A stretch of 64,000 nt of DNA, from assembly GCA_965285935.1 (NCBI GenBank), contig OZ260667.1:44888001-44952000 (forward strand), in the 5' to 3' direction. The notes beneath the pieces were generated by a model. That model was given only the letters and a program-made list of their open reading frames with translations. It did not search any database and was not told where the DNA came from. Numbering within the stretch: position 1 is the first letter of the stretch; each line of letters starts with the position of its first letter. Position numbers and translations under genes: made by a program. The DNA comes from Ophelia neglecta (lineage: Eukaryota). Below are positions 1,151 through 48,250 of the stretch, piece by piece.

Positions 1151-1599
1151 GTGCGCCCGCCATGTGTGATTAAATGATTTATGAAAACATATAGGCCTAG
1201 CATTCGCCTATATTATAACCATTGTGCGGCCGGTCGGCGACTGATGCGGTCTCACTAGTGTAAAACTAACTATATAACTTCGATATTTGATATCATATCA
1301 CTGGTTTTGTTTTGCTTTGGTATAATATATGTTATTTTTTGGTCTGGCGGAAGTGACGGGCTTCTGGGGTGCGCGCGCACGCTCATACATGAGTGTGAGT
1401 GGGCGTGTGCGCCCTGGGGGCTCTGGTTGGCCTCAAATACACCTTAAGTTAGAGTTAATATTCAACATTTGATGGATAATATTTGATATTAGCACTAGTT
1501 CTTCAGATTAGTAATAATGTACTACCTTGAACAACCCAGGATAAATGAATATGTTGAAACTAAATAGGCCTAGAAATAATAATAAGGTAGGGACTGACC

Positions 1600-1673
1600 C
1601 GTCGGATATGACCCGACACACAAACTTGGTATTACAAAACGGCTTCTGAGACCAGGACTGTTGAAGACCATTA
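1600..1673 (-). mobile_element. Left piece of an old L2/CR1-like LINE split by the younger LINE
   Basis: Minus strand reads MVFNSPGLRSRFVIPSLCVGS, continuing the LKL(N)KD... thumb motif that stops at 3909. Confidence 0.6.
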
Positions 1674-3901: not shown

Positions 3902-3908
3902 ACCATTA

Positions 3909-4860
3909 TCCCTGTCTTTGTTTAAGCTTCAAATTGTTATGTGAAATCCAGTCATGGATGTCTTAAAATGGTTTTCAATGCGTGCCACAGCAATATTCAT
4001 GGCCACCTGGTGAATAGGTCTGACAGAGAGGTAAGCCTGTGTATACATCATAGATGTGAAGTCCAAGCCCATGACGACAAATGCCATCACCCGGCCAGAA
4101 TATAAGATGTTTATGCGGAATTGCAACGGTCCTAATACAGATCCTTGTGGAACCAACCAGCACATGCGTTACAGACAAACTATCCAGGAATTTCAGCCCT
4201 GTTTCCTACCAGACAAATAGGAGTCAAACCGCTGAAGGGCATTTTTGTCAATTCCTAGCCTGTTCTTTATTTGTTGGAGGAGGTTGGTGTTGTCAGTGGA
4301 GTCAAATGCGGCTCTAAGCTCCGATAAGACAGCGCCCTGTTGATCCAAAGATATTAGTATATCACTGTGAACCTTGTTAGAGCAGGCTCCGTACTGTGAC
4401 TGGGTTTGTAAGCCACCTGGATGCTATCGAGTAGGATGTTATCGTTCATGTATCTAGTAAGCCTTGCAGCAACAACTCTCTCCAATAATTTTGAAAGGTA
4501 TGAAAGATTGCTTGCAGGTCTGTTATTGCAAAGAACCTCAGAATGCAGCTTGGGTTTCTTCAAAAGGGCCCAGATGACTTCATGGATTCCGTCTTGTCGA
4601 CACAGTGCGTTTAAAAATGTCAGTAATGACGGGGGTAAGTTCCAGGCGAAAATTGTCAAACTACCACGCTGGCAGTGGATCAAGCAAAGACGACATCTTA
4701 GGGGCACGGGATATTATTTCGAGAATTTCTTTCTATATAACAGGTTCAAATGCGACCATTGATGAGCCTTGATTGTTGGTTCACACTACCTGAAGACACA
4801 GGGAGGGAAGCTTTGTATTTGTTTGAAGAAATTAGCAATACGGTTGGCAATGGTCCAAAA
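3909..4860 (-). mobile_element. Old degenerate L2/CR1(Crack)-like LINE, RT region
   Basis: Remnants IANRIANFF, LDPLP, LLKKPKL...NNRPASNLSYLSKLLERVVAARL, QVAYKPSHSTEPAL and VPQGSVLGPL, with stops and frameshifts. Confidence 0.85.
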
Positions 4861-7800
4861 CCATTTTAATTTAATAATAAGCAGGATTTCATCTACCTAC
4901 ATATGCAAAATGGATGAAGCCCAATCTATTTATAGAATGCTTTAATAATTTGTTTTAATTATTATTAATTAACTGAGTAATGAATTATTTTATATGTCCT
5001 TAACATACTTGATTAGCCTTAGGAAGATCTTCGTTTTTTTTAAACTTGCAAACTACACATGTTGTTTGTATTTTTTCCAAATGTAACGATTTAGCACCAA
5101 TTTAGATGGAAAGTGTCATGTCTTAGACATATGCACATTTAGTTTTGAAAGTGGCTAATAATTGACTTTTAAAATATACATATTCAGAGTTTTCATAAAA
5201 AGTAGATGCTTCTTTCATTATTTGAACGTTTCTTCCATGGTTTCCAATAAAATTTATATACTGTCGAGGAACTGAAGTATCAGTGGGGTTGCATTTTGTG
5301 GATCCTGATTATTTTGTACCCATTTGATGGTCTATTATTGATTAATCTTTTGGCTTGTCTGCCGGGTATACATTATCGATTATTCATGATTCCAACTCTA
5401 CTACAAAGGAATATCAATAAAAAGCCCTGCATTGGTTACCCTGCTCTCAGACAATTATCTAATACAAATTCAGGGGCTGGTCATTTACAATGCCAGGGGC
5501 AGGGCCACAAATCCTTGCTCCGGTTCAGGCAACATTTTTTATGACCACCTTTGTCAATAGACCAAACTAATTTTGTGCACCCCCCCCCCCCCCTCTTAGG
5601 AGACTGCTGATTCTTTGACCACCCTTCCCACCCCCATCATCATTATACCAACTTAAATTCTTATTCCTGTGTGAACAGACACATAGTATTAGAAATCTAG
5701 GATAAGAAACTGTAGCAAAGTTCTAATTACTTACCCAATAATTAAAAAATGTCCCTCCAACCCAGCTTAAGCTCCTGACATTCCACAAACCCTTTTGGGT
5801 GTGACAACATACACCCATCTACACTCACACAAAACAAAACCTGGTACAAGGCAAACATAATTATTCATCTTTGTCAGCACATGTCCATATATATTAACAG
5901 ATGCAAACATGCGCCTATAAAATAAAAAACACTCTTTAATGATGCCGGTCATATTTTTATTATAATAGCCAAATAATGAGATTTGTTACAGAAGGACATT
6001 ATATTTTTGTTATTATGAGAAAAGAATCAAATTAAATATACATGAAAAAACCGCCCCATAATTTCATACTTCACAATGAACACTATTCTCTTTCATCACA
6101 TATAACTATTCATTGTTGAAAACTGAATACCATTTGCATAGATATAAATATAAATACAAAAACACAACCAATTCAAATGATCATAATTTCTACCTTCTAC
6201 TCCCAAAAAGAAAACTTTTATAATTTTTATTTCAAATTTGGCATAAGAGATATTCTAAAAGAAAGTTGATCAAACTGAGAGGAACAAACACTGTCAAAAT
6301 AGAGATTAATATATAAATATGGAATTTTTACATCAGTTCAAGATAATCTACACCAACAACTACATCCCTACTTTCATCAGATATACACACAAACAGAGGT
6401 ATCAGCCAGGGTGTTACTGTTTTACCACTATCTCACAGCTATAGGAGACTGACTTGGTTTACTTTTTTCTGACATCCAGGACTTAACTGGACATTTTTAA
6501 CATATATTCACTAACGTCACTAACTATAGTACACATACACGAAGGTTCAATACAGATATGTAATTATGTACATAAATAGGTTAGAAAAATAATGTATCTG
6601 CTCAATAGCACCTCTAAACTTAATAAACTAATTCACAAGGGTTGGAGTTCTGGAGAGTTGGAGACTTCTTAGTTTTTGACTTTATTCGGGTTTATCACTC
6701 GTTCTTGTCTCAGACTCAACTCTAAGACATGATTGTGTGCAAAATACTTGCTTATTTACTGATTTAAGTCAGTACCTTAAGTGTCCAACCTTCGAGAACA
6801 CCACCCCAGGTCATTGCACCCATTCTTGGCCACAACACAGCGGGAGAGTAAGTAGCAACCTTCCATAAACTCGCCATGAACACATTCTTAAGGTAAATAG
6901 TAGTTGTTTTCTCATACAAGTAGTGAACAAATTTTGGTAGAAGCATCGGTTTAGTTGGCTGTGATTGTGCAAAAGTCAACACAATCCTGTATCAATCCAG
7001 ATAAGAGGGGAGAGGGTTATCACATTATTATAATGTTGATCTTACAAGATCGATATTATACACACAGCCCAACTTTGTCCGTCCCTACACTCCTGCTCAT
7101 TGCTTTTGCACAAAAACGTGGAACATGTTCATTTACTGGCAAGCCATCTTCCAGAAAAGTAATTTCTTAACAGTTATGCAATCTTAATCAACATGTTATT
7201 TTAACACCAATAATGCCACTTCTAAACTGCATGACATAAAAAATAACAATGCATATATACAATGCTTTTTTAATAGTGTGCAACTTAGCTAAAATCAAAA
7301 TTTTATAATGCCAGCCTCTGGAAATATGTGGCAAAAGTACAAAATAAATACATGGAAATAATGTATACAAGTTCACCCAGTGTATGTATCAGTTTAAAAT
7401 AACGCCAGACAAATCAGCCGCAAGTTTGCCTGCACACATGTACATGTGTATTTAGAATACTGTTCTTACGCTGACAAAATGCTTTGAGATTCGAAACCAA
7501 ACGATTTTCTTGTATGCTCTTCTCTGAATAACTGACCTTGTATTTGAATACCATAGAAGTTTCAGGAACATAGGTAATATACCGAAAAACTGGTACACAG
7601 ATAAACAAGATGGAGATCACTAATTTTTGATCTAGTCAAAGGACTTGTATCCTTAAATAGCAGTATATCATTATAAATACCACTGCATGTGACGTTTTGA
7701 AATCCTGCTAATTGTCCAAGCACCTCAGCTATATGCTGATGTGTAAATTCATAATCAGTGAGACCTTTGATTGAAACCACCCACAGAACCAGAAAATACT

Positions 7801-8932
7801 GGTTTGATTATGGAGGTGATCTATCAAGACAGGTTATTTAACAAAGATTGTTTACAGAGCAGTCTCCATTTTAATTGTCTGTATCAACATGTGGTCTGAA
7901 TACAGAGGTGGTCTTAAAGGCATTTTACATGCATAATACTCTTTACAATGTAGCCCAATAAATACACCAGCTTTATAAAATATTTAATTTTATGTGTATA
8001 ATAATGCTTTTCATTATTGGCCTTGGATATAATAAGAGTTCAGCCTGGCCACGATTAGGAGTTCCAAGAACAAAAGGTGAACATACATGCTTGGCTATGA
8101 TTATGACAAAAAACACTATTAAATTGTATGAACGTCATAAGCTACCTGTGGGAGCCATATAGTAGAGCTATTGCTGGTGTGTATCGCTTTGATTGGCTTT
8201 AATTCAGGACATTCTGATGGCACAAAATCTGACAGAAATTTCTACCGGCTGTTCTGATGTAGAATTTTGTGATCAGTAAAGGTTGAGTCCTAGGTGATCC
8301 ATTATGGGTAAGACATTTTTCAACCCCATGTGCATTTGCCAATATAAATAAAATCCTGGTTGGCAAAGGTGACTGGTTTAACAGTAGTTAGTCAAACCCA
8401 TACAAGCATTCTAGCATGTTCTATAGAGCTATTCGGAGGGTATTTTGTATGTTTTGAGGCTTCAGACCAATTCTCTTTTTATGTGTCTGTAGTTTTAACA
8501 CTGTGCAAATAAAAGTGCTATTATATTAATGATGACATGGCTGTTTCACTGGGGTCAAATAAAGATGTCTGCTTTAGCACACGGTAAACTGTTTAATACT
8601 CCTCACTGCACTATCACCACGATAATCATGCATAAAACAGACACCCGTCACAGGTGCATGTACACATTCACTTCCTACTCGTATCCATTTTAAAGCATCT
8701 CAAGTAGGTTGAACAAGATTCTAAAACATAAAGCAGCAATCACAAAACTCCAAGGAAGCAAGTTGTCTGAATATACCGCTAGTCCAGACCGTGACGCTAC
8801 AATCCACACTAGTTATAACTGGGGCAAATGAACATAGCCTTACAAAAAATAGGACAATTGTAGACTTAATCATGAGGATGAAATAGGAGTCTATTATATA
8901 ATGCTTTGACACATTGATGAAACCTCCTGGCT

Positions 8933-8992
8933 TATATATATATATGTATATATATGTATATATATGTATATGTGTATATGTATATATATATA
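8933..8992. repeat. (TA)n / TATATG microsatellite
   Basis: Direct reading. Confidence 0.9.
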
Positions 8993-10476
8993 GTACAGGA
9001 CTATACAGTATAAATGCATTGTGATTTGATTTGGCAGACATCACAAACACAGTGACTGTATTGTAATACATATTTACACTTAGCATATCGGCTAGGTATT
9101 TTTTCCCCATCAAACCATCAACTTATTTGCCTGCATACAAACTACCTGTACAAACCCTTGTCAGACTATCTGGTTCTATACTGATCACAATTAACGCATG
9201 CATTTAAGGTGACAAAATATTGTGTTTGATTTTCCAGTAAAGCAGGTGTCTATGTAATTATTTCATATATACTCATACCACAGCTGCTGTCACACCAGAG
9301 ATGCCAAACACAGTACATATAAAACTGAAGTTATTAACTACCTATATGTTGGAAAAATATGATATTCAGCTGTAAAGGAGATCGCCAACCCTGCCTAGAT
9401 GCCTTACCTGCTGCAAAAGAATTAGGAGCTTTTCATAATTTGTAAAGTAGTGCACATACAGGAATATAACCTACCCTGCTCTGGCACCAATATGGGCACC
9501 AAGAAGACCCTGTATTTATAAATAAATGTCAAATTTAACTGCATAAACCTTGATGACACTTTAAAATACATATATGCTGTATGATGCTATAAGCTTAATG
9601 ACTTGACCCTGCAAATTTTGCTAGCATGTAAAATCTGGCAAATATTTATACTCAAGAAGAATTTTATTGTCAGAATGGTTTCTTTACAATTTTTTTTTTT
9701 TATAAAGCTTCATAGCAAAAAGTCATCCTGACATTCTTTCAAATTTGCCTACTGGTAAACCACATACACAGATATGAGTTACATGGTTATATGACAAAAG
9801 CATGTAATAGAATTCAAGAACAAGAGTTTCTTTTTTAATATATTATTGCCTGTCTACATGATCGCTGTCATCATTTCCTTTTGTTACTAAAGGTTAGTCA
9901 TTTGAGAGATGGGCTGAAAATCCCACCCTGACATTGAATCACAAGACACAGACCAAATTATTTTCTCTTCAAAGTACAAAGTCGACAGACAAGAAATTCT
10001 ATTCACAGTCATTTTTACTCTCAACCCAAGTTTATGTAGCACAAAGCTAAGCAAATTTGAATAAAAAGATGGACCTAGTGGTTAGACCCAGGGGATGTTG
10101 GTTTGGGAGCTACGAAAGGTTTGCGATAGTTTTTTTTTTATATCAGTGATGCAAAATGAAAGCATGTGCATGTGTCTGCCTTGCACAAGCAAGGCTTGCT
10201 TGAAAAGAAAATATGAATCGCAGATATCAGTTCTTGTTTGACCAGTCAGAATAAATGTAATTGAAACTGATGTAAAATGAATTTGACGGTCATTTTGACA
10301 CCTTAGAAGATAACCTCTGGTTTACTGTGAATTTGCTCGTCACTTATAATCTGCCAGTTAACTACTTCGCTTCACGAATGCAATAACAAGAGTGCTAGCC
10401 AATCACAGCTGGGCTAGCTGCTATATAGTGAAGAGAAGTAAAGGGCCAGTATAAATTATCAATGTAAGAACTCAAT

Positions 10477-10755
10477 AGCCTGGAGGACTGCCCGGTCCAA
10501 TGGGTATCTTTTCAGCGACCCGTATAATAAATCCACCGTGTGATGGGGAGCATGAAGTAGGGGCAGGGATAAGTTTGCTCGGTGGATTAAGGTAGCGATA
10601 GTTGAGTATGACGTCACGGTATATCGTCACAGGGGAAGGGTCACTAAGGCATTGTGTATAGTCAATATAAACCTTTCATTTTAAATAAAGTCCAGAAGAA
10701 GGCAGGCTTGCCTGCCGAAAATTCGACATTAATACCTTGGTGTTTTGTTTTATTT
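10477..10755 (+). mobile_element. Penelope-like element 3' fragment with a minimal hammerhead-like motif
   Basis: 12-bp TSD TAAGAACTCAAT at 10465-10476 and 10756-10767. Internal DKFARWIKVAI resembles the GIY-YIG C-terminal R-x-I-K-E-A-I motif. Hammerhead-like core at 10687-10730. Confidence 0.7.
10687..10730 (+). ncRNA. Minimal type I hammerhead ribozyme-like motif (core variant CAGAAGA)
   Basis: aaagtc-CAGAAGA-a-ggcagg(cttg)cctgcc-GAAA-at-TC-gacatt: stem I with one mismatch, perfect stem II, palindromic AATT in place of stem III. Position 4 is A rather than the canonical U. Confidence 0.55.
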
Positions 10756-12187
10756 TAAGAACTCAATGTTATAGATACCAACACTTGGTTTAAAAGGTAT
10801 TTCTTTAAATCCTTAACTGTGATATATTCCTGATGATGCACCTTAGTACCCAATGCAATTATAAAAGGCTAACCCGGTAGCTAAGAACAGGAAAGCTTGA
10901 GGATTCAACAATTGAATTTAAAAGTGACGGGGAAGGGAAAGGCCTAATTACAAATTGATTAGAGTGTCCACTGCTTCTGTGTTCTGTTTCCTATATTTGA
11001 AAGTATGTGTTCTAAGCATGGTGGCTTCTGTGATGGGAGAGTGACAAGCTTTGTTCCCCACTAAGTAACAGTAACCCTATCCATCTAACACCCCTGACAA
11101 ACCAGTGTGGTCTCTGTGGCACATTGAGTAATATGTTGAATTTTATAAAGTGTGAGTCTGCTTTGAACCAACAGTTTCTTTTCTCAGAATAAAAATTTAA
11201 TAGGTACGTCTAATAATCAAAAGAATTCTGGTAGGCGTTGGCAAGGATCGGATGTTGTTGTTAGGAAATGTCTCGGTTGTAGCTGGCTATAGGCACTTAG
11301 CAGGCCTGCACTGAAGTAGGCAACTGGTAAATTCGCAGAGTAGCAGTGATGAGCAAATTCACAGTAAATCGTCGATTTAAGAAGGCATGCATTATCTGAT
11401 ACATGGTATCTCATATCAAGTATCAGGTTTTCCAGCACTCCCTTTCAAATAGTCTCTAAACATATATAGAGTTATGAATATGAGACTGTTTGACATTTGA
11501 TTTGTCCCTAGAATTGTTAACAGAACAAAATACAATCTCTACAAAATAGTTTTTCTGGTGCAACTTATTACAAGCTTTAACACTTATCTCTGCAATAATT
11601 CTTGATCAATATGACATTAAAAAACTTCAACTGAAAACATGTACCTAACATCTCCGACTCAGTTTAAGGGGCAGTGAATCTCAGGTCATATACTTTCACC
11701 TTCAAATTTAAATTATCCATTTTATGCCTATGTTGGTGATACTGAGATTATTGTTGGCTGATAAAGTAAGGTGTACCAATCCACTTGTCAACTCAGAAAA
11801 TAGCCTTGGAATCAAATTTTCCAAAACTTTTCCAGGTGTAACAATATTATTCATCTAGCCAATTTTTGCAGAATTTCAGACTGATTGTATCATGTTCATA
11901 TGCTGTCATATTTCTTCCTCTTGCCAGCCACACCCAGCTCTGGGCTGTTATAATGACATCCGAGTTTCCTCCATTTCCACTTATCACCTATCATCGGCAC
12001 ACTTTGCACAATACTCTGGCTATAATAACCCTGGCAGTAATGTTTCAACCTCATGACAGATTTTCATCCTGACATGTGTTGTCGCCTGTGTCTTTATGTG
12101 TTGCACAAATAAGAAGATGCCATTGCAACATCAAAAGAAGCCTGTACAATGCATCTGCCAATGAAATGATCCCTCTTAAGTTTACGA

Positions 12188-12331
12188 TTAGCTGTCCAGT
12201 GCCATACATCGTATGGTGGTAGCGTAGCCTCTTGCCTCAGTTTGGATCCAGCGATAGGAGCTCAATGGATTGCCAGTAGGCATGAAGATCATTCGGGTCT
12301 CTCGCTTGGTGCCACATGCAGGCTTATGTAT
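12188..12331 (-). CDS. Uncharacterised secreted protein, coding exon 4 (IHKPACGTKRETRMIFMPTGNPLSSYRWIQTEARGYATTIRCMALDS*)
   Basis: Strong T-rich acceptor ending ...ttttccag; phase 0 matches the donor at 15103; 144 nt ending in TAA. Confidence 0.75.
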   Translation of the reverse strand: MHKPACGTKRETRMIFMPTGNPLSSYRWIQTEARGYATTIRCMALDS

Positions 12332-13368
12332 CTGGAAAAAAAAACAAAGGAGATAAGTGAGGAGCATTTCAACGGTTTTCAGACAATCTAAAAATGAACC
12401 TTTATGTACTATCAGGCCTGATAATATCGGTCCGTGTATATCCCTATAGTGCCCAGCTCATACCTGTACTACAAACCTAGAGATGCCCAGAGTGCCACAC
12501 ATAGTATCTGACTTCATCCATTAAACAACTAGGTCTGAACCTTGCCACAGCAGATGGGAGCACACGTTTTTTATAACCAATGAATGTTATTTTGGTTGAA
12601 AATACACCAGGAGAGTTCGATCACCAACCGTGAGAATGATGTCCACTATAGACATTTCCTATCTCTCAACCTACTAGACATAATATTTTTTATGCTTTTC
12701 TTCTATGGGAAGATGACTGTTTTTTCAACTGCTGTATGATATTTTCTGGAGTCTGAATGTACTACTTTCAAAGGTGTTATCTTTACCCATTTTTAGACAT
12801 TTTTGGACAAAATTCAAAGTCAGATTCGAGGTATTTGTGAATGATACCATCTGCACCATATTCAATCCCCACAAAGGACCAGAAATGAAGATTATCTCCA
12901 CAATTTCATCCATTCTAATGTTTTATGTCAGTCAAAGTTGTCATCTGTGATGGTCAGTTTCATAAATTTGAGCTTTTTTATTAAAGTTAAATGTCTATGG
13001 TGGCCATCATCGTACTATCAATAATATGCAGCACAATACTTGTTTATCAATAAAGCACCAATAACATTAATATAAATAAGGCAATTAATACCATATGATC
13101 AGAATTTTATACCTGCCGCAAATGTACACATGCATTTTGCCCTACTTATGATTACAGATGCAAAACAAGAGTTATCTCTTGGGAACTGATGAGCGATGAC
13201 ATTCAGGCAAGTCAGCCATGTACTCTTTCTCTCGCTTGATATAGCCAGAACAGTGTCATGTTTTCCCATTTCCTACTCAAAGCGGCTCTCTATTTTATTG
13301 GTAGAGTCTTGTTATCAACAACACAAGTTTTTATCTCTATTTCTAGGCCTTGTATTATTAAGCACAGA

Positions 13369-13570
13369 CTGTATCCCAGCAAATGATCATGAACAGCAAA
13401 TGTTTGCAATTTTTGCAAACATTTCCTGCACATAGACTTAACATAATGGATAGTTTGGTAATTGAAGGAATTTAACAGTAAAGGCAAATCATTAAAAATT
13501 TCTGCTGCCAAGTTTTGGCTAAATCAAAAATCACAATTTTTTCCTGCAGCAAACATTTTCTGGGTTACAG
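13369..13570. mobile_element. Short Tc1/mariner-type MITE remnant
   Basis: Imperfect TIRs ctgtatcccagcaaatg / cattttctgggttacag, with TA on the right flank. Confidence 0.55.
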
Positions 13571-15103
13571 TAGTTTGGTAAAAAAATACTTGATTCTGTT
13601 GGCAAGTAGGCCTAGGCATTGTGTCCAAATTGTTGGCTACATGTAATCAATTTCAAGGACAATGGTCTTGGCCAGGCATAAAGACTAGGACACCAAAACA
13701 TGCTGTAGGTTTATCATTATTTGATTTGATTATCCCCATTGATTTAGCATTCCTAGCAATTTTTCAAAAACAGAGCTCTCTTGCTTCGAGAATGTTCACC
13801 ATTCAATGGCTTATTTAGAACTCCATCAAATTAATAGCAAAACATTCACATGAGCAATATTAATAAATTCATGTTGAAAACAGCATTAACAGCTAGTGCT
13901 AGGCTAGAAAATCAAGCATGCAATAAGCAGGGGATGGGGTTTTTTCGTCAGCCTGCCAGCTCTAGTGAAGGCCTTTCTGTATTGATGCCAGTCTACCACT
14001 AGCCAAGCTGCATAGCAACAATCAACTATTACTGAGGGCTGAGTGGATAAAGTGGCCAGGATGAAGGGACTGGCTGCTGGCATCTACATGCAGAAACGAC
14101 AAATCAATAGCTGAGCATGGGTTGGTCTATTTGTTCTGACCAGTCTTAGCCACCATTCATCAGTGTAGCTGTTATGTATTGAAGCCAAGCATGTAGAGTA
14201 CTCAGATAGCTAGGATGCCGAGACAACCACAAGTTCTCAATGAAAATTGCACAAGTGTATAATCTCATTTGTCTTTTCCGAAGAATGAAGATTATCACAA
14301 CACAGCCGTTCTGTTATTATTTGCCTTCTGCCTGTGTATAACATACTATTACTACTTAAAGTAAAATATATAATTATTTATTTTTCCCCTCAAGAGAAAT
14401 TAATAACTTAACTAATAACGAAAAATAACTAAAGATATTACTAATTCCTATTAATAACATGATAAATAATGACTATATAAGTCAATAGTTCTGTGGTACA
14501 CACTTTGATGTACTTTTTTTCTGCTTTAAAGCAGATATTCAGCACATAAAGAGCAGAAATAGTAAAAGCAGCAACCAGAATTCGGAAATCAATTTGCTGG
14601 TAACATCAAAGAGGCCAGCCCTTCATACAGGGTATATTTATGAAGCTTTCTCATCCTGTTTTCTGATCATCAAAGAAATAGGTCAACTGGGGGATCATGG
14701 GGTAAGATTTATGGTATTTCACACCTTATCTGGTATTGCAGCATCTCTCAGGGCAATGCATACATGTATATAGGCCCAGGCTAGATATTTCTTTGGATCA
14801 TAATGCTGGGCAAGTCAACAAATTAACTTCGGCTGCCTTGGCAGACGGCATGTGCCAAGGTACTTGGGGCAGTCGGTAAAAAAAACAAGCTGGTATGACA
14901 TCCCCGGGCAAATCGGTTTCTGATTTTTGCCACTTAAGCACTGTCTTCATTTCTATCTCAGTTCTTTATATGTTACATTCTTCAGTAATATCAATCTAAA
15001 ATATAAACATAACAAAGGTGCCTCGGCTAGTTCAGCTGGTCATATTTCCTAGCAAAGGGGAATAATACATCATCAGAAGAAAGAAGAGTGCTGAGATGCT
15101 TAC

Positions 15104-15272
15104 AAAAGCTGTCCACAGCTGCTTGTACGAGCCATGCTCCCGCATCATCGCTCGGCAGAGTGCTGCTATGTCGTTCTTGCCGTCAAACTTGTCCATGTGT
15201 TTCTTATTGCCTTGGTCACCGCAATGAGATTCGTGTAAATAAAATACATGCCGCAACTTTTTTCCATCAATT
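15104..15272 (-). CDS. Uncharacterised secreted protein, coding exon 3 (IDGKKLRHVFYLHESHC...YKQLWTAF)
   Basis: Acceptor gttttcatttcag, donor GTAAGC, 169 nt (phase 2 to 0). GC3-biased codons stand out from the AT-rich flanks. Confidence 0.8.
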
Positions 15273-17803
15273 CTGAAATGAAAACATTGACAATCAATTC
15301 ATAATTCATGAGCTATGTTTTCTGTAAAAAAGAAATCTCAATTAGAGAGGTAGACAGTTTATTTTTATAAAAATTAACTCCTCCTCTAAATCTTTTTGTA
15401 CATATCTGTTAGGAGTGCAATAATTCATTATAGTATGATTTATGTGATTTTTATGGGATAATATATGTATCATATTATGCGGTCTGTATAATGTGATAAG
15501 GTTACAATTTGACTATTAGAGAAAATTATATGTTCTACATAGCAACATAAGAGCATATATGAAAAAAAATAAATGAAATTTTAGAGTTTATCTTCATATC
15601 ATATTAGCATCAATTTTATCATTTTACTTAGCTAATGCTCACTTTTCTGTTTTTGTTGCAAAATGGTTTTTACTCATTTAATCAATCTGTGTATTGTTAT
15701 ACTTATTGCATATGTACATGTATTGTGTCATGTACATAGTGTTCTGTTACACCTCTTATGTCTAATTCTGTGTTCAGACGTTATTTTTTGGACTATGGTT
15801 TTTCAGTCTTAAATGCTTTCAGAGAATATTCTTTATTAATGATAGTTTACAATATTTCAAGCTGGAAATTATGAATACAGCTAAGGTTAAAATAATAATG
15901 TTACATGCTTTCTCCAATGAAATCATTTGTAGATTTGATGTTTTAGCCAAAGTATATATGACCATATAAAATGAAAAATACCTATGGAGGTTACCATGGT
16001 TACGAGCAAATTACAAATACCTGGACAGGAAATAATAGGTAGAATAGGATTTAAAATGTTCATGGAACATTGCTCTTTCAAATAAAATCAGGTTTATGCA
16101 TTAAACTTCCAAAATATAGCTTTTTTGGGTCACTGTCTGCTCTGCTCTAATATCTGCAGCAGTTCCCCAAAAGTCAAGAGCACAATTTATATTCATGGAA
16201 TGCTGTCAGGAATAATTCTGCTCTGTTGGGTTTTGGGAATCCATGCATTGAATTTAAAAATCACCTCTCCTTAGCCATTCACACTCATTCTGTAGGAATG
16301 ACTAGGGAATAATAAGAGATTTTTAAATTCTCCATGGAACTGGCCACAGATGGGGGCAAATCCCTCGTACACGCCTGCATACAGAATTATCTCTGTTGTG
16401 TTGAAGGTTAAATTGCCTGACAAAGGCACTTCCTTGTTAAATAAATTGGTGTCATGTCTCTGACAGCAGCATTATGTAAAAACAATGTGTTGTGTAAACA
16501 CAACTAGCCAGGATATTGCATGCACCTATCATAATGCAAAACAAGTGATGTTTCAAAACATCATATGGCAATTTGCCTTGAAAATAGTGTTTGAATTTAT
16601 GCAGCATTCTAATATGATAAATGTTTCCTCCTGACAAAAAAATCCTAAACATAGATAAAGTTTTGACAATAATAGATAACTGTGGTCCCAGATATCTTTA
16701 AGTAGCAAATGACTGGAATCTGAAGACTTCTGCAAAACACTGTCCAGCAACTTTTACCCATTTGGCCTCAGAAATACAATCCTTGATCATCAACTGTCTT
16801 ACTTTGTAAACCATACAGTCAGGCCTACTCATGTAGTATGTATGCCCTGTAGGTCTTAGAGGGAGGAAGGGCACATCAGACATCTGATCTCTGGTCGACA
16901 TGTATTAAAGCTCGTCCTGGCACTTATAAACCTATTCTTTTTTCATGCCATGGACCAAAATTTCTGCTGATTTCAAGGCTATTCATGGACAAATTTAGTT
17001 TTCAGGATATACTGGCAAGTCTGGTCATTGGTTGACCGTAAAGTGGTAATATATTTGACAACTGTAACATTTCTGGTGAATCATTTCAATTTTTTCATGA
17101 ACACCGGCAAGTAAAAGTGAAGTGCACACTGTTATGCTCAGATAGGGTTGTGCTGGAATACCACATATAGCAAGCGAGTTGGTCATTATAGTGTGTAATT
17201 TTTTAACCAATAATTCAACAGATATTTGCCTTTCAAAAGATACCGGATTTGATACCAAACACGTTTTGAATTTGACTTTATAATAAACTTTATCATGGTA
17301 AACGTATTGCACCCACCATGTGTATAGCTGGCGTGTGAAGGCTGGACGGTCACACAGAGACTATTACTGTACATTGAACACCACTGTACTTGCTACATGG
17401 CGCAAATTGTTCTGGCTACCATCAATCAAGATCGACTGATCTTTCTTTTCATTTATACACTTTTTAATTATTTCCATATCAATTAATATAGAAATAATTT
17501 TCAGAATATTTAGGCACTGACTTTTTTTTTTTGCACCTGCCCTATCGGTGAGCAATAATACAAGAACAACAGGACAGTGATTTTTTGTGGCTTCACCACA
17601 TAATTATTTTCTAACATACACCGTCGGGCATGCATATGTGTGATTCTAAATGCCTGACAAACTGGGCAGTCGGTCGTCCGTTAGTGTCTGTGCCTGATAT
17701 TGGGAACATCGACATGTATAAAACAATGGGAAAAATAATCAATAACATGACTATTTAGTACGAGTTTAGAAATTAATCCCAAGAATACAAACGTTATGTT
17801 TAC

Positions 17804-17906
17804 TCCATTGGGCATGCGATATTGCCACGCTGCTTCTTAGGGACTAGGTTTTGTGGGCTTTTTACTTTGGTGAGTTTGCCGGTGGTTGAACTTAAGTCTT
17901 GTGTAC
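17804..17906 (-). CDS. Uncharacterised secreted protein, coding exon 2 (GTQDLSSTTGKLTKVKSPQNLVPKKQRGNIACPME)
   Basis: Acceptor ...ttttctaaaaatgacctag, donor GTAAAC, 103 nt. Phase 1 to 2 exactly bridges exons 1 and 3. Splice sites are weaker than those of the other exons. Confidence 0.65.
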
Positions 17907-18072
17907 CTAGGTCATTTTTAGAAAAATTACATTGTGCTAAACTTGATATAAGAGAGGCTCTTTGCAGAAGTGCAAATTGCAAAAAATATATGTAGTCAAG
18001 ACCATGATAGTGATCCCTGCTCCCATTACATTTGAAAATATAGAACTTCAATTTTTATAGGTTTGTTTCTTA

Positions 18073-18724
18073 AGGTGGTATCACAAGATCCCGGATTCAT
18101 CGCCGTTTTGTCCCGTATTAGAAAAGGTAGCAAACAGGTAGTTTTCCAGATTTTTTGACCGGACTGTTACGGATTGTCCCGTGTTGTCCCTTATTGTCCC
18201 AAAAGCGAACCGGATTTAATCGCGCATGCGTTTGGGAATGGCGCGAAATGACTTCCTGTTTTCCTGTTTCTACAGTCTCTTGGTCTTGTTTACGCCAACA
18301 TGGAGAGATTCCAGGATGCCCGTGCCAGGGCTCTGAAAACCCGCGCAGTCGTGGTGGCAGCCTTAGCGGTGTTGGTCGCCAACGAAGTAGAGGAACAGGA
18401 GAGGGCCTCGAAGAAGAGGCGAGAGAGGAGGAGGGAGCTACGGGAGAAAATGGGCAAGAAACGCTCTTGCTGGTCACAGGGATGGCTGCTTCGTCGCACG
18501 ATGTTCGGCCGGTTGATTCCGGATGTCCCCGGTCATTGAAATTTTTCAACACTGTTCAAAACTTCCCGATATTCGCCCGGATTAAACAAGTGTTCCCGGA
18601 TGGCCTCCCGGAGGTTCCCGGATATCCCAGGATAATACCGGTGTTCCCCGGAATGTCCCGTATTCCAAACGGGACGTTCCGGTAGGCCATCCGGGGACAA
18701 ATCCGGGATCGTGTGATAGCACTT
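18073..18724 (+). mobile_element. PIF/Harbinger internal-deletion derivative
   Basis: 25-bp imperfect TIRs (AGGTGGTATCACAAGATCCCGGATT), TTA TSD at 18070-72 and 18725-27, CCGG/CCCG-rich subterminal repeats. Confidence 0.88.
18300..18539 (+). pseudogene. Truncated N-terminus of a Harbinger transposase
   Basis: Hydrophobic stretch, then an R/K-rich run, then RSCWSQGWLLRR, matching the R-x-W-V-R-x-W-L-x-R-R N-terminal motif of Harbinger transposases. It runs into the right end sequence. Confidence 0.7.
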
Positions 18725-20810
18725 TTATCAAGTAAATACATGTATCTTCATTATGAAGTATTTTTTCTAGATTTGTTCATGGTCTCAATCTGTATGAGAA
18801 CTGTACAAAGCTGTAAGTGTCAAGTTGTATTATTCTTTCATTGCTAATGTCAGACATTTTATCACTGTGGGTCATTGAAATACATTATTATCAGTGTCTA
18901 TTCTCACCTGATATTGTGGCAAGCCCACGTTTCCGAGGGAAATTTTGCCTCAGTCGTTACACTAGTATCACATGTCACAGTACGGTTGAACAGCCTGGAA
19001 GAGCTCTTGAATAATTTCTCTGAAATAAGAAATAATTTGTTTTTAGCGAAGATGGAAATTATTTAAGTGTTAAAGAATGAATTAGAAAATTTAATAATAT
19101 ATTAATCTCTATCTGGTCTATGCTGGGGACTGATGGTTACTTAATATACATAATGAGACCACCATTTATTTACAGGCAATGGAGGGTAAGTACAGTGAAA
19201 TGATATGGATTCATGTATAGCCATTCCTGGGCTCATATTCTCTTGTGTCTTTATCCATATAATCACCCTTTGGTCACGATAAAATGTTTTTTCTCCCATT
19301 TCTATTGCTTGACATCAAACACCAAGTTATTTGTTTTCCTGTTTCAACTAAATCTGGTATATTCTGACTCAATAACATAGCTCCAAGAGATGTTTTTGTT
19401 TCTCTAGGACTGGTGACCATTTCCTGGAAATTGCCATTTACAGAAGCAACAGACTCCTTTCCCTCAGGTTACAGGTTATAAGTAGCAATCTCACTGAGTA
19501 TAAAGTGATGGGCAAATGGTCTATTCTAGTCAAAGATCTCTTATTTACTTCAAAACATGAAAAACAAAATAATAAAAGTGGTTGATAGACAAAACATGAA
19601 TACTATTCTACCTCGATTTAGAATTTAGTGCTGTAGCCGAATACTGATAATTTGATTCCAGTACTGGTAATAAGTTTTATTGTACTTTCTATACAAATAT
19701 TTTAGTAGGTTCAATTAACCTATTATCATAAAACATATACTTCTTGTACATATCATATGATGGTTCACAACAGTGATTGTTTTTATCAGATTACTAACAT
19801 TACTGGTAGTTATAAACAGAAGACTACAATCTTGCATTAAAGATGTTGCTGAACATCCAATATTTTCAATAGAAATTTGAAAAGCTTCCCTGGAGAGATC
19901 ATTAAAAGGCTTAATGGACCTAAAGTACCAATATGTAGCCAGAACAACGGGTACAAGATAACAGTAATAGCATCAATTGTAATTAGCAGGAAAACAGGTT
20001 TTCAGCAAGGCCAGGAGGAACGGAGGCACTTATCAGGATTCTCCCCAGCAAACCCTCCCTGGCGGTGCTCAGTCCAAGGTACATGTACCTAGAATACTTT
20101 GGACACAACTTTTAATTTTTCAAACCAAGAAACAAAGAATACTTTGGACCCAACTTTTAAACCAGTGTTATCAGGTTCTGTATGCCTCTAGTCTCTCAAT
20201 CTATAAATCAATTTTTGTGAAAGCAAAATATGTATCAAATGAAAAGCCCTCTTTCTGACTCAGACTATTTTGCTAGGTTTCAGCCATTCACTCCATTTTC
20301 AGAGCTTCCCCTATTGTATTTCTGAAGTAACCCTTTATTGAGCACCAGCTGTTCATGACAGGCTGCACATATTTATACAAATACATGTATCTAAAAGACT
20401 AGCCACACATGCACTCACACTGACTAACAACCCAATAATTAACTCACCCACCTTCATACAGAACATGAAATTATAAAGATACATAATATGGGTATAACGT
20501 CGACATGATCGACACACATTGACATGACCCACTTGAAAATCACCACGATCGACACACAAGGTTTTGAATTGACCAAGACACACTTATATTCATTTTATCT
20601 TAAGCCTATCTTCTGACACACAACACACATAACCTCTATATTGACACTGGACAGTTGATATACCTAAGCTGAAACAGACACATGACATCAAGTTTTTCAA
20701 AAATCTGACACGACACCCAATTAGAACAACCCACCAATTATTAAAAAAACAAGCTGGTTGCCCGCCAGATCTTACTGATCAGTATTTTGTCGGTCTATGT
20801 ACTGTAACCA

Positions 20811-42793: not shown

Positions 42794-44290
42794 CCCAAGC
42801 CGCAGCCATACTGATGGTGATAAAAGGGATTTATTGAACATACTGGTACCTGATGGAATATTGCCTGAAGATATATCAAGGATACATACATATATGATAT
42901 GATATATGTACATGGCCAAATAGGCCTTTGTATGCATACAAACACACTTCACCAGACAATTGCAATTACCTGAAATACATAGACATTTGGCATGATTGGT
43001 TGAAAGATGCATGCCTTACCCATTCATATTTCAGCCATTACATATTGTCATAAAAAGCATGCCAGTCAATCAATACCATTAATTTTACCAGCCTGCACCC
43101 ACTACCTGTAACTTATATTGATAATATTGTGGGTGCACCAGGGTGCCCTGAAAAACAATATCCTCCTTTCCACTCAGGATATAGTTAGACCTACCCCACT
43201 TTGAGCGTTGGCAGGTTGTTTTTAAACGTTTTTAAAGCCCAGCCCAAGCTTTCATGGCAAAAATGCTGCCTCTCACAGTCTCAATTGGCTGGATTAACCA
43301 TTATATACTCACGATATTTCTGCCAGTAATGCCTTGAATGTTATGCACCAAGCAGTGCAGCCGGAATTCCACAGTGAACTGCCACTGGATTGAATATTCA
43401 TTAATGGAAATGAAATCATGCAAGGGCCATTGAGGCTAGGATTTTGTCCTGAATTCCTCCATTCACGGTCTTTTATGTTGGCCATCACAAAGAATCTTGG
43501 CCAAACAAGGTCAAGGCATGCTGTGTACAATATTGTGTATGTGAAACACTGACCAACTGTTGTAAAATATAGTTCTATCATCACGCCTAGGAATCGTTAG
43601 AATCATATCCATGCGGTTATGTCTGTAGCCGCTTCGCTCGCCAAATCCGGTTAGGGTTCAATCGGCACAGAAACAGCGCCAATGCTCCACCGAGGTAAAT
43701 ATCTTGCCGCTTTTTTTACTCTATAATGTAAATTTCTGAAATCGGCGAATGTAATTCTACTCCTTGGTAACATATTTATCATCCCATGTATGAAAGTCGT
43801 CTGAACGGCGCTTCAGTTGCCGGTAATATCTTTCATTTCAACGCAATGACCCGTTTAATCATTCAAGTGGAATGTGTAATTTCAGTTTGAGCACGTTCCT
43901 TACCAGTAACACACTTCTAACCATCTATACTTGAGTGATAAATATTCCCACGGCTCATAGAAAGCCGCTGTAGCCGTTTTAGTTGTATGGTGCCTTTTGC
44001 AGCAACCAAAACTATATATTGACATTTGGATATGATTCAATCGTCGAAGTTAAGATTCAATCGAGTATATATTTACTATAGAACAGAGGCTTCCAGCTAC
44101 TAAAACTGCATACTATGCGGTTGTCAATTGGGAAGTTATTTGTTATTAGGCAGGCCATTATTCTAAATTTGTTTATCAATGGAATAATATTGGATATCAC
44201 CTGCTATAGTTCAAAATCTAGTTCAAATGCAGTTTGCGCACAATTTCGTATAAATTGACACATTTCTTTTCTATTTATTTACTTCAGATA

Positions 44291-44851
44291 ATGAGCCAGA
44301 GTGCAAGATATTGGTGCGACGCATGTGGCAGGACTTTCAGTACGAAGTACCGAATGAAATTCCACCAACGTAATTACCACGGAGACGAGAGTGTGCCAGA
44401 AACAAAGTGTTCCTATTGCGAAAAAACATTTGCCACTGCCACCGTGAGGAGAAAACATGAGAAAGAAATACACATGGGGGCAAAACCATTCCCATGTAAA
44501 ACATGCGACAAAAGGTTTTCCTCTCAGTCAGACCTCAATGGTCATATTCGGGCATGTCACCCGGAGGCAGGATTAGAGAGATTTCGTTGCGAAAAGTGTG
44601 ATGCGACATTTTCCTACAAGAGCTGCCTCAAACAGCATCTGTCCACATGCGATTCAAATACCAAAACCTACAGTTGCCCAGAGTGCCCTAACGTCTACAT
44701 GTCCAAACGTGCAGTACAATTACACGTAACAGCAAAGCATCGTCCTGTCAACCAAATTTGCGAATTTTGTGGTGCCTCATTCACCTACAAGTTCTCCTGT
44801 GAAAGGCACAAGCAACGGAAACACGGTGGACAAAAGTTTTCATGGTTATAG
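44291..44851 (+). CDS. Transposon-borne zinc-finger protein (5 C2H2 + 1 C2HC fingers, 186 aa)
   Basis: Six CxxC-x12-H-x3/4-H/C units, GAKPFPC linker. ATG follows the acceptor tttacttcag at 44287. Confidence 0.88.
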   Translation: MSQSARYWCDACGRTFSTKYRMKFHQRNYHGDESVPETKCSYCEKTFATATVRRKHEKEIHMGAKPFPCKTCDKRFSSQSDLNGHIRACHPEAGLERFRCEKCDATFSYKSCLKQHLSTCDSNTKTYSCPECPNVYMSKRAVQLHVTAKHRPVNQICEFCGASFTYKFSCERHKQRKHGGQKFSWL

Positions 44852-45032
44852 TAAATTTGTGGGGACTCTTGAGAGGTGTAAATGATATCCTAAGTCTTTT
44901 ACTTTGGGGTGACTTGGCAGGACTCGGCAGTGGAGAAGTATTGTTTTCTAAACTCATTCGGAATTTGTACGAATTTCGTTTCGTTCTTGAGAGAAATAAC
45001 CCTCGTTTTCTCTTTCCTCTAAAGAATGCCAT
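44781..45032 (-). pseudogene. N-terminal fragment of a second transposon gene (basic NLS-like stretch, S/TP-rich), probably cut by an internal deletion
   Basis: ATG directly after acceptor ttatttgctttcag. Reads MAFFRGKRKR...SPLPSPAKSPQSKRLRISFTPLKSPHK, then runs into the antisense of the ZF ORF. Confidence 0.5.
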
Positions 45033-46139
45033 CTGAAAGCAAATAACAGCTGATATCAATATCATTCAATTTTCCATGCGTATATATATTTTCCCTGTCC
45101 AAAAAGGCTCACAGTAGGTAGCAGGGCAGTAATAGGCAATCATATTAGTCATTTGATGATGGTTATGGAGTGCGTTTCCACCTCGATATAATCATATCTT
45201 CAGAGATAGAATCATAACCACATTTTACATTAATTTCCCCAAGATAAGTGCGTTCACAAGAAGGCTGTAAATAATGTAGCGTATTCCTGTGAACAGGACG
45301 AAACTTTCGGACATATATTTCGCCCCGTATACACATTAAAAACCACCCAAAAGCTAACCTTAGCGCCAAACATGTTGGATTTAGAGGGACGACATTGATA
45401 AATGAAGGAAATTTGAGGCATTTCGAAGCACTGTTTAAACACACTTCTTTATCAAATGAATCGTGGATAACCGTAGGGTAGAATTACATTCGCCGATTTC
45501 AGAAATTTACATTATAGAGTAAAAAAAGCGGCAAGATATTTACCTCGGTGGAGCTTTGGCGCTGTTTCTGTGCCGATTGAACCCTAACCGGATTTGGCGA
45601 GCGAAGCGGCTACAGACATAACCGCATGGATATGATTCTAACGATTCCTAGGCGTGATCATGGGACCAGTAAAAAGCATGGATTAAAGTGATTGTTAATT
45701 TGAAGTGTTTGGTATCGGAATGTGTTTGGGTTTTAAGGTGCTGGGCTGTGGCATATACAACGTACATGTATTCACTTAACCCCCCCCCCCCCTTTCCATC
45801 CCTGAGACCATTACCACAATAACCATAACTCCAAATCTATCCACACACTTTCATCCAATAGGACAGACATTATTAAATCTTTCAGTTCATGGAAGCACCA
45901 ATAGGCACATTAGTCCTCCTAGGGGTTCTGGGGGCATATCCTTACCCCACGGATGCTTACATACCCCAATAGTACAGAATTTTATTGATAGAGAGGAGTG
46001 GTGACATTATGTCACTAAAGCAAATAGCCACACAGTAATACCATTTGCTGCAATCTCCGCTGCACTACAGTGAAGTTGTTGAGGAATACTTAAGTTGATG
46101 TTAGCATGACAAAATAATGGGATTTCAAACTCAATTCCG

Positions 46140-46514: not shown

Positions 46515-48250
46515 AGGACCGGATCACTGCCCCAGGACACAGGAGACAAAGGACAGGATCACTGCCACCGGAGGAAACAGGAGACCCGAGAAGAGGATCA
46601 TTGCCACAGGAGGACCAAGGAGGACACAGGAGACCAAGGACAGGATCACTGCCACCGGGGGAAAACAGGAGACCAAGGACAGGATCATTGCCACGGAAGG
46701 AAAAAGGAGGACAAAGGAGGACACAGGAGGACACTGGAGACCAAGGACCGGATCACTGACTCAGGGGGACACAAGAAACCGGGACAGGACCACAGCCACA
46801 GGAGGAAACAGGAGACCCAAGGACAGGACCACAGCCACAGGAGGAAACAGGAGACCAAGGACAGGACCACAGCCACAGGAGGAAACAGGAGACCAAAGCC
46901 AGGATCACAGCCACAGGAGGAAACAGGAGACCAAGGACAGGATCACAGCCACAGGAGGAAACAGGAGACCAAGGACAGGATCACAGCCACAAGAGGAAAC
47001 AGGAGACCAAGGACAGGACCACAGCCACAGGAAGAAACAGGAGACCAAGGACAGGATCACAGCCACAGGAGGAAACAGGAGACCAAGGACAGGATCACAT
47101 CCACAGGAGGAAACAGGAGACCCAAGGACAGGACCACAGCCACAGGAGGAAACAGGAGACCAAGGACAGGACCACAGCCACAGGAGGAAACAGGAGACCA
47201 AGGACAGGATCACAGCCACAGGAGGAAACAGGAGACCAAGGACAGGACCACAGCCACAGGAGGAAACAGGAGACCAAGGACAGGATCACATCCACAGGAG
47301 GAAACAGGAGACCCAAGGACAGGATCACATCCACAGGAGGAAACAGGAGACCCAAGGACAGGACCACAGCCACAGGAGGAAACAGGAGACCAAGGACAGG
47401 ACCACAGCCACAGGAGGAAACAGGAGACCAAGGACAGGATCACAGCCACAGGAGGAAACAGGAGACCAAGGACAGGACCACAGCCACAGGAGGAAACAGG
47501 AGACCAAAGCCAGGATCACAGCCACAGGAGGAAACAGGAGACCAAGGACAGGATCACAGCCACAGGAGGAAACAGGAGACCAAGGACAGGATCACAGCCA
47601 CAAGAGGAAACAGGAGACCAAGGACAGGACCACAGCCACAGGAGGAAACAGGAGACCAAGGACAGGATCACAGCCACAGGAGGAAACAGGAGACCAAGGA
47701 CAGGATCACATCCACAGGAGGAAACAGGAGACCCAAGGACAGGACCACAGCCACAGGAGGAAACAGGAGACCAAGGACAGGACCACAGCCACAGGAGGAA
47801 ACAGGAGACCAAGGACAGGATCACATCCACAGGAGGAAACAGGAGACCCAAGGACAGGATCACATCCACAGGAGGAAACAGGAGACCCAAGGACAGGACC
47901 ACAGCCACAGGAGGAAACAGGAGACCAAGGACAGGATCACATCCACAGGAGGAAACAGGAGACCCAAGGACAGGATCACATCCACAGGAGGAAACAGGAG
48001 ACCAAAGCCAGGATAACAGCCACAAGAGGAAACAGGAGACCAAGGACAGGACCACAGCCACAGGAGGAAACAGGAGACCAAGGACAGGATCACATCCACA
48101 GGAGGAAACAGGAGACCCAAGGACAGGATCACATCCACAGGAGGAAACAGGAGACCAAAGCCAGGATAACAGCCACAAGAGGAAACAGGAGACCAAGGAC
48201 AGGATCACAGCCACTGGAGACACAGGAGATTCAAGACAAGATCACAGATG
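46515..48250. repeat. 38/39-bp purine-rich minisatellite (aggaggaaacaggagaccaaggacaggatcacagccac)n
   Basis: Homogeneous core about 46780-48215 with degenerate edges. 611-bp higher-order duplication. Confidence 0.95.

Follow-up and report, generated by a model that had tools for sequence, protein, structure and literature searches.

Which kind of DNA transposon is represented by the 2075-bp element at 43582-45656 of the Ophelia neglecta window (a 64,000-nucleotide stretch of contig OZ260667.1), and why does it carry a zinc-finger gene? The element has CAC...GTG termini, one copy of ATCAT on each side, and terminal inverted repeats (TIRs) of 179 nucleotides (nt) that differ by a single mismatch (178/179 identical). 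A first-pass annotation of the window had described these repeats correctly. It had also proposed that the element is very young, that it belongs to the Transib/ProtoRAG or EnSpm/Chapaev group, and that it is a deletion derivative of a two-gene element. Comparison with other copies and with relatives leads to a partly different answer, to which we assign a probability of roughly 0.8. The element is probably a non-autonomous internal-deletion derivative, with recent mobility, of a ~7-kb two-gene cut-and-paste transposon that has a P-type transposase with an embedded nuclease and a C2H2 zinc-finger partner gene.

The left TIR, when searched against the 762-Mb genome as the first-pass annotation had suggested, gives 24 matches at 99-100% identity, which represent 12 elements between 1.86 and 7.04 kb long. 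Once the boundaries are set correctly at CAC...GTG, 11 of the 12 copies are flanked by perfect 5-bp target-site duplications (TSDs), which are unrelated, mostly AT-rich sequences. The TSD is therefore 5 bp rather than 2 bp, chance is excluded, and the alternative of a 2-bp AT duplication at the window copy falls. A repeat finder run on the window reports slightly longer arms (43572-43760 and 45478-45666; 189 nt, 98%), which include part of the flanks. Between any two copies the ends diverge by 0.2-0.4%, and the variants are nearly all singletons. This pattern is that of one recent burst and bears out the young age.

Each short copy aligns as two blocks, with its own breakpoint and an overlap of 1-9 nt at the junction, to a 7043-bp copy on contig C3 (L025), which is the only full-length copy of the family. 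The short copies go back to one 7-kb form through separate internal deletions, and the window copy is a deletion derivative, as had been proposed. The full element has 179-nt TIRs that start with CACGCC, 5-bp TSDs, and convergent genes for a six-finger C2H2 protein of 182 amino acids (aa) and a transposase of ~1440 aa. The zinc-finger gene of L025 ends at reference position 1259, and the large minus-strand frame occupies 2191-6454. This frame is split into stretches of 859 and 588 aa in different frames, both of which are collinear with an intact 1394-aa paralogue from a sister family in the same genome. In the window copy, reference positions 1-1257 are joined to 6225-7042 (blastn), and about 4.97 kb (1258-6224) is deleted. 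Both TIRs and the complete zinc-finger gene are retained, but only 76 codons of the transposase remain, and the copy is thus movable only if transposase is supplied in trans.

Two of the derivatives, L029 and L034, have identical breakpoints (1179/6363) yet occupy different loci with different TSDs, which implies that deletion derivatives have themselves been mobilized. The twelfth copy (L026, C1:80536458-80541378; 4.9 kb) is unusual in consisting of two right-end halves in inverted orientation (~1.37 and ~1.24 kb), with 2.3 kb of unrelated DNA between them. Its flanks, AATAT and AGTCA, do not match; it may have arisen by rearrangement or through aberrant transposition. Contigs from public sequencing runs also contain a joint between L025 positions 2130 and 5641 that skips 3510 nt and has 299 other letters inserted. 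Since no such joint occurs in any of the 12 assembled copies, the sequenced sample must contain at least one further deletion-plus-filler derivative.

The zinc-finger open reading frame (ORF) of the window copy runs from the ATG at 44291 to the stop codon at 44849-44851. It contains six C2H2 fingers, in agreement with the first-pass annotation (Pfam zf-C2H2_4, E 2.4e-19 over six stretches; zf-C2H2, E 5.7e-17). The sequence immediately 5' of the ATG, ttacttcag, resembles a splice acceptor. Comparison with the other copies reveals an S8W substitution that is private to the window copy. Among the 12 copies, only L030 retains the ORF intact besides the window copy; the others have a mutated start, frameshifts or truncations. 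The native C terminus, ...KHGGQK, is present in L030 and L032. A minus-strand ORF (44781-45065) does converge on this gene, as had been reported, but the apparent collision of two genes near 44840 is not one. The ORFs abut at the deletion junction, 44836-44838; 3' of ~44836, the minus ORF reads through into sequence antisense to the zinc-finger gene as far as 44781. It has no Pfam match and shares 97% identity with residues 1-78 of the 859-aa frame of L025.

The large protein of the full element is predicted to have the fold of the Drosophila P element transposase, with a split RNase H (DDE) domain and a large helical insertion domain. An AlphaFold2 model was built for residues 195-1394 of the 1394-aa paralogue from 69 aligned sequences (predicted local distance difference test score, pLDDT, 86.8; predicted template modelling score, pTM, 0.77). 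Foldseek ranked the Drosophila P element transposase first (E 8.9e-5), followed by lambda exonuclease and then RAG1. In VIA-align comparisons, the P element transposase (6p5a_A) reaches Z 28.7 over 314 residues, with a root-mean-square deviation (rmsd) of 2.7. The matched part of its chain, 200-565, takes in D230, D303 and E531, the catalytic residues of the P element enzyme (PMC7776569). Lambda exonuclease/LHK-Exo matches model residues 222-456 with Z 15.6. Scores for the other transposases are Z 12.3 for HzTransib (rmsd 4.7), 11.7 for RAG1, 9.6 for BbRAGL and 9.3 for Hermes.

Sequence profiles point in the same direction. Among 40 relatives, 18 match PF21787 (TNP-like_RNaseH_N) at E up to 1, with a best E of 1.5e-5. 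Only the P0029 protein exceeds the cut-off (25.7 versus 24.6 bits), and the Ruditapes philippinarum protein scores 21 bits. These matches cover only profile positions ~62-134 and are located after the YqaJ domain. PF09588 (YqaJ) likewise matches 18 of the 40 relatives (best E 2.9e-14), and the family profile finds LHK-Exo among PDB sequences at E 4.7e-5. Single-sequence Pfam searches with the L025 ORFs and the 1394-aa protein of sister-family locus L061 gave no match, to PF21787 or to any other family, and a phmmer comparison of the 1394-aa protein with PDB sequences produced nothing above noise; neither this search nor that with the family profile reached a RAG1 or Transib chain. A search of the ESM Atlas found one YqaJ-bearing cluster and nothing else. 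An exhaustive phmmer search with the large protein retrieved 2014 representative clusters at E up to 0.001. The database homologues come from bivalves and one annelid; all are named 'uncharacterized', and some carry PF09588.

The RNase H domain is interrupted in its N-terminal half by ~480 aa that comprise a coiled-coil stalk and a PD-(D/E)XK nuclease of the lambda-exonuclease/YqaJ type. This nuclease-bearing insert is conserved across the 2014 representative clusters. In the model, the strand with the conserved DGKK motif comes first and is followed by three long helices and the nuclease, and then by the remaining RNase H strands. On the basis of this order, the coiled coil and nuclease appear to be inserted between RNase H strands 1 and 2. 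Three acidic residues, D249 (26/26 non-gap alignment rows), D799 (39/40) and E1348 (33/34), form a conserved triad that is the putative DDE catalytic site. The nuclease has E in 33 of 36 non-gap rows at E573, and its VSPDG and ExKC motifs are nearly invariant (alignment A6). The L025 protein contains FDGKK, SSDGEF and SESFFG at the positions equivalent to the putative DDE residues, as well as the nuclease motifs corresponding to those of its relatives. The nuclease was out of reach of the first-pass annotation because it is deleted from the window copy.

The N terminus of the paralogue is predicted to be disordered at residues 1-61 and helical at 82-179, and neither Pfam nor the N-terminal model indicates a zinc finger there. 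A fold search with the N-terminal 276 residues gave nothing above Z 5, and the weak collinear match (Z 4.6) is to the P element region just before the RNase H domain. No Pfam THAP match is present in the large proteins or in the 40 relatives.

Many relatives of the large protein are found in the genome. One family, 31-33% identical to the window family at the amino acid level, is represented by three copies of ~8.2 kb each that are 99.6-100% identical (L061 and L065, C7:70151089-70159290; L063/L066, C12:16.43 Mb; L064/L067, C7:31.06 Mb). Its transposase is encoded by the uninterrupted 1394-aa ORF (L061:5053-9234, minus strand), and ~1.4 kb past the 3' end of that frame is a convergent ORF of 249 aa, which encodes about seven C2H2 fingers. 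Comparison of the three copies places the ends at CACGCTGGG...CCCAGCGTG, with ~50-nt TIRs and the TSDs TGAGT, TAGAT and ATGTT. From their sequences, these copies look like intact, possibly active autonomous elements, and their near identity and apparent integrity make activity directly testable.

A shorter relative forms a cluster of five or more closely spaced copies within 150 kb (C7:110055706-110207760), and one more copy is found at C1:146280306-146284445. Their open frames of 321-589 and 694 aa match parts of the transposase, and the cluster could have come about by segmental duplication or represent a derived gene family. In addition, the canonical, contiguous TNP-like RNase H N-terminal domain (PF21787) has 24 matches genome-wide, with scores of up to 115 bits, some of them within open frames of 680-852 aa, which means that the YqaJ-bearing lineage shares the genome with ordinary P/THAP9-type elements or genes.

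A convergent C2H2 ORF of 180-370 aa, located 1-4.5 kb downstream of the transposase gene, is found at seven element loci in at least five genomes, and it lies inside the TIRs wherever TIRs can be defined. The survey covered loci with enough downstream sequence, which L043-L060 and L062 lack. Besides the two families of O. neglecta, the loci include elements of R. philippinarum and Mytilus edulis and one from assembly GCA_025402995.1 (Table 1), an Owenia fusiformis locus where a five-finger ORF converges on a decayed transposase gene, and the P0001 contig, in which a convergent C2H2 gene is called. Five partner proteins are collinear finger by finger and terminate right after the last finger, and three of the five have a C2HC variant at the same finger. 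Because the convergent C2H2 gene recurs across families and species, it is read as an integral partner, and the one-off capture of an exon is ruled out. This supports the proposal in the first-pass annotation that a poly-C2H2 protein is the partner or regulator of the transposase.

The termini and gene arrangement resemble those of Transib and RAG-like (ProtoRAG/RAGL) elements, which would require a RAG1-type transposase with a convergent partner. The 5-bp TSD and CAC ends fit such elements. The TIR starts with CACGCCT in the window, which resembles the heptamer of recombination signal sequences, and the Mytilus and Ruditapes relatives have the termini CACAGTG and CACAGCG. Two convergent genes between TIRs are exactly the arrangement of the protostome RAGL transposons known in molluscs (PMC7204232). 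RAG1 and Transib proteins do match the model structurally, but more weakly (Z 9.6-12.3) than the P element enzyme, which is far better (Z 28.7, rmsd 2.7, versus 12.3, rmsd 4.7). The PF21787 matches among the relatives and the PDB sequence searches also speak against a RAG1-type transposase. Moreover, the partner is a C2H2 array and not a RAG2-like propeller, and the TIR is without the A-rich positions 8-10 that the protostome RAGL consensus has. The predicted protein fold already refutes this assignment, which we consider extremely improbable. The termini and long TIRs would also suit an EnSpm/CACTA-Mirage-Chapaev (CMC) element, whose TNPA-like accessory could correspond to the plausibly DNA-binding protein of the pair. 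However, each of the 15 intact insertions that were examined has a 5-bp TSD rather than one of 2-4 bp, no Pfam Transposase_21 or related match was found, and the best fold match is again the P element. The C(2)C and H(3-4)H motifs of the EnSpm-Mirage-Chapaev-Transib group are absent as well; between D799 and E1348 of the family alignment, only H1185, C1195 and C1259 are columns with at least 60% C or H. A CMC element is hardly credible on these grounds, and neither group membership offered by the first-pass annotation survives, the predicted fold being of the P element/THAP9 type.

It is also conceivable, although we think it unlikely, that the lineage is an ordinary and already catalogued part of the P superfamily, to which the zinc-finger gene and nuclease are incidental. 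The predicted fold and the weak Pfam matches are P-type, and the same genome holds the 24 canonical TNP-like matches. Against this stand the 5-bp rather than 8-bp TSD, the absence of a THAP domain, the conservation of the nuclease insert across so many clusters and of the zinc-finger partner between species, the 'uncharacterized' naming of every database homologue, and a literature search that gave no link between YqaJ and the P element transposase or Transib. Finally, the zinc-finger ORF might be a family-specific captured host exon or gene fragment with no role in transposition. C2H2 arrays are very common among host genes, and with the ORF intact in 2 of 12 copies no selection is visible within the family. 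The recurrence of the convergent ORF at seven loci, and the finger-by-finger collinearity of proteins that end after the last finger, make a capture of this sort highly improbable. The interpretation as a P-type element with an embedded nuclease and a C2H2 partner is thus kept in what follows.

Comparison with known systems shows in which respects these elements are distinct. With the P element and THAP9 they share, as far as the paralogue model tells, a split RNase H DDE domain with a large helical insertion domain, as well as cut-and-paste movement with TIRs and common internal-deletion derivatives. They differ in the 5-bp TSD, in CAC(G/A) termini, in TIRs of 50 to about 600 nt, in the lack of THAP, in the ~480-aa coiled coil and nuclease insert, and in the separate convergent C2H2 gene. 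The P element itself generates an 8-bp TSD, carries an N-terminal THAP domain, uses GTP as a cofactor and makes a 17-nt staggered cleavage (PMC7776569). From RAGL and Transib elements they are set apart by the transposase, which lacks the zinc-motif pairs, and by the nature of the partner. Tn7 provides a working analogy, in which a DDE enzyme (TnsB) and a PD-(D/E)XK nuclease (TnsA) cut both strands at each end; its TSD is also 5 bp. Unlike the present elements, however, Tn7 is bacterial and has the two activities on separate polypeptides, with a nuclease of another subfamily.

A YqaJ exonuclease and two ORFs also characterize another eukaryotic DDE lineage, ISL2EU, which makes a 2-bp TSD. In these PIF/Harbinger-related elements, YqaJ is located on the second protein, and the PIF-like transposase has a THAP domain (PMC4482050). 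Here, in contrast, YqaJ lies inside a P-like transposase, the second protein is a C2H2 array and the TSD is 5 bp. No PIF-type Pfam match was found in the large proteins or their relatives. Kolobok elements, which target TTAA, include a further DDE lineage with a second nuclease, KolobokP. It occurs in molluscs, annelids and other marine invertebrates and has acquired a His-Me finger nuclease (PMC9587614). KolobokP differs in having a Kolobok transposase, another nuclease fold and a composite-like structure.

The findings suggest a mechanism, although the roles given to the nuclease and the zinc-finger protein are drawn from analogy alone. The transposase lacks THAP or any other zinc-finger DNA-binding domain, so the C2H2 protein could be a sequence-specific partner that binds the ends and recruits the transposase, as does the Myb-like protein of PIF/Harbinger or TNPA of En/Spm. 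We give this role about even odds; that the protein is instead a regulator or repressor seems less probable. Somewhat more tentatively than the end-binding role, the DDE site might nick the 3' ends and carry out strand transfer at positions staggered by 5 bp, with cleavage or resection of the other strand left to the PD-(D/E)XK domain, comparable to TnsA beside TnsB. The nuclease may instead favour repair by recombination of the gap left at the donor site. The deletions with 1-9 nt of microhomology would have arisen when gap repair following excision was aborted, as happens with P and Ac/Ds elements. If expressed, the zinc-finger gene of the window copy could add to the pool of partner protein or titrate it.

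Several points, besides this reliance on analogy, weigh against the interpretation. The only full-length copy is defective: its transposase gene has a frameshift near L025:4380 relative to the intact paralogue, its zinc-finger gene has a frameshift in which A7 replaces A6, and its right terminus (C3, about 806367) reads ...GGCATG instead of ...GGCGTG. With both genes and the right end affected, the assembled sequence holds no evidently functional source of transposase for the window family. The fold was predicted for the sister-family paralogue (31-33% identical) rather than for the window family's own protein, and the catalytic placement rests on secondary-structure order and profile coordinates rather than on inspected coordinates. 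Some relatives (Ruditapes) have a C2H2-like finger at the N terminus of the transposase, so the partner may not be the sole DNA-binding module. In the P0045 contig no zinc-finger gene is called downstream of the transposase. A k-mer search of the subterminal regions for repeated motifs that could be zinc-finger binding sites gave nothing convincing, and no RNA runs containing the element were found.

Two explanations that would remove the transposase frameshift of L025 were rejected. A short GT..AG intron at this site leaves a spliced frame that still meets a stop codon. A homopolymer assembly error is contradicted by an independent public-run contig that covers L025 2101-5670 without gaps, spans the site and has the same frameshift, which is thus real in that sample. 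The change at the right terminus, CATG for CGTG, is a CpG-type transition at the third terminal base and occurs alongside the frameshifts in both genes.

The literature search found no published link of YqaJ with P-type transposases, Transib or THAP, and no published C2H2 second ORF in such elements; Repbase and Dfam lay outside this search, and earlier cataloguing as "P" or "Transib" is possible. Perhaps these elements constitute an undescribed, superfamily-level lineage related to P, widespread in lophotrochozoans, with RAG/Transib-like ends acquired by convergence, DDE and PD-(D/E)XK activities in one polypeptide, and an obligatory C2H2 end-binding partner in place of THAP. As a whole, this wider proposal is doubtful.

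If it is true, some non-autonomous invertebrate elements with CAC ends and 5-bp TSDs have possibly been misassigned to Transib. TSD length and terminal sequence serve as diagnostic hallmarks in the classification of DNA transposons, and a transposase predicted to be P-type is found here with the hallmarks of Transib and RAG, in animal groups that also carry true RAG-like transposons. For this reason, annotation of non-autonomous elements by hallmarks could mislead studies of RAG origins. The embedded lambda-exonuclease-type domain would amount to a natural experiment on how P-like enzymes handle the second strand. A conserved C2H2 partner would be a third kind of DNA-binding accessory in eukaryotic two-gene transposons, besides the Myb-like protein of Harbinger and TNPA of En/Spm.

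Table 1. Parts of the window element and related elements of other genomes. Functions of the subterminal regions are presumed.
Sequence	Feature	Position	Strand	Remarks
Window	Left TSD, ATCAT	43577-43581		Copy at 45657-45661
Window	Left TIR, 179 nt, starts CACGCC (CACGCCT)	43582-43760	+	178/179 versus right arm
Window	Left subterminal region, presumed promoter/5' untranslated region (UTR) of zinc-finger gene	43761-44290	+	Collinear with L025 180-709
Window	Six-finger C2H2 gene	44291-44851	+	182 native codons, 4 junction-derived codons (FSWL) and stop; Pfam
Window	Internal deletion junction	44836-44838		2-nt microhomology; blastn versus 7043-bp copy L025
Window	Transposase gene remnant, first ~76 codons	44836-45065	-	Basic, S/P-rich, predicted disordered; similarity to L025
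Window	Right subterminal region, presumed promoter/5' UTR of transposase gene	45066-45477	-	Collinear with L025 6455-6864
Window	Right TIR, 179 nt, terminates GGCGTG	45478-45656	-	Inverted-repeat match to left arm
Window	Right TSD, ATCAT	45657-45661		Copy at 43577-43581
Ruditapes philippinarum, L068	Element, ends CACAGCG, TIR 55 nt, TSD CTTTT	5235-13859		Transposase 1472 aa, YqaJ-positive; convergent C2H2 ORF of 232 aa
Mytilus edulis, L070	Element, ends CACAGTG, TIR ~54 nt, TSD AACTT	5576-19066		Transposase ORF present; convergent six-finger C2H2 ORF
GCA_025402995.1, L071	Element, ends CACGGGG, TIR ~570 nt, TSD GACAT	7086-16724		Transposase ORF present; convergent seven-finger C2H2 ORF

A tandem array lies ~1 kb downstream of the element in the window (46722-48247). 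It consists of 40 copies of a 38-bp unit with 93% match, and it explains a repetitive minus-strand ORF of 235 aa at 47516-48223.

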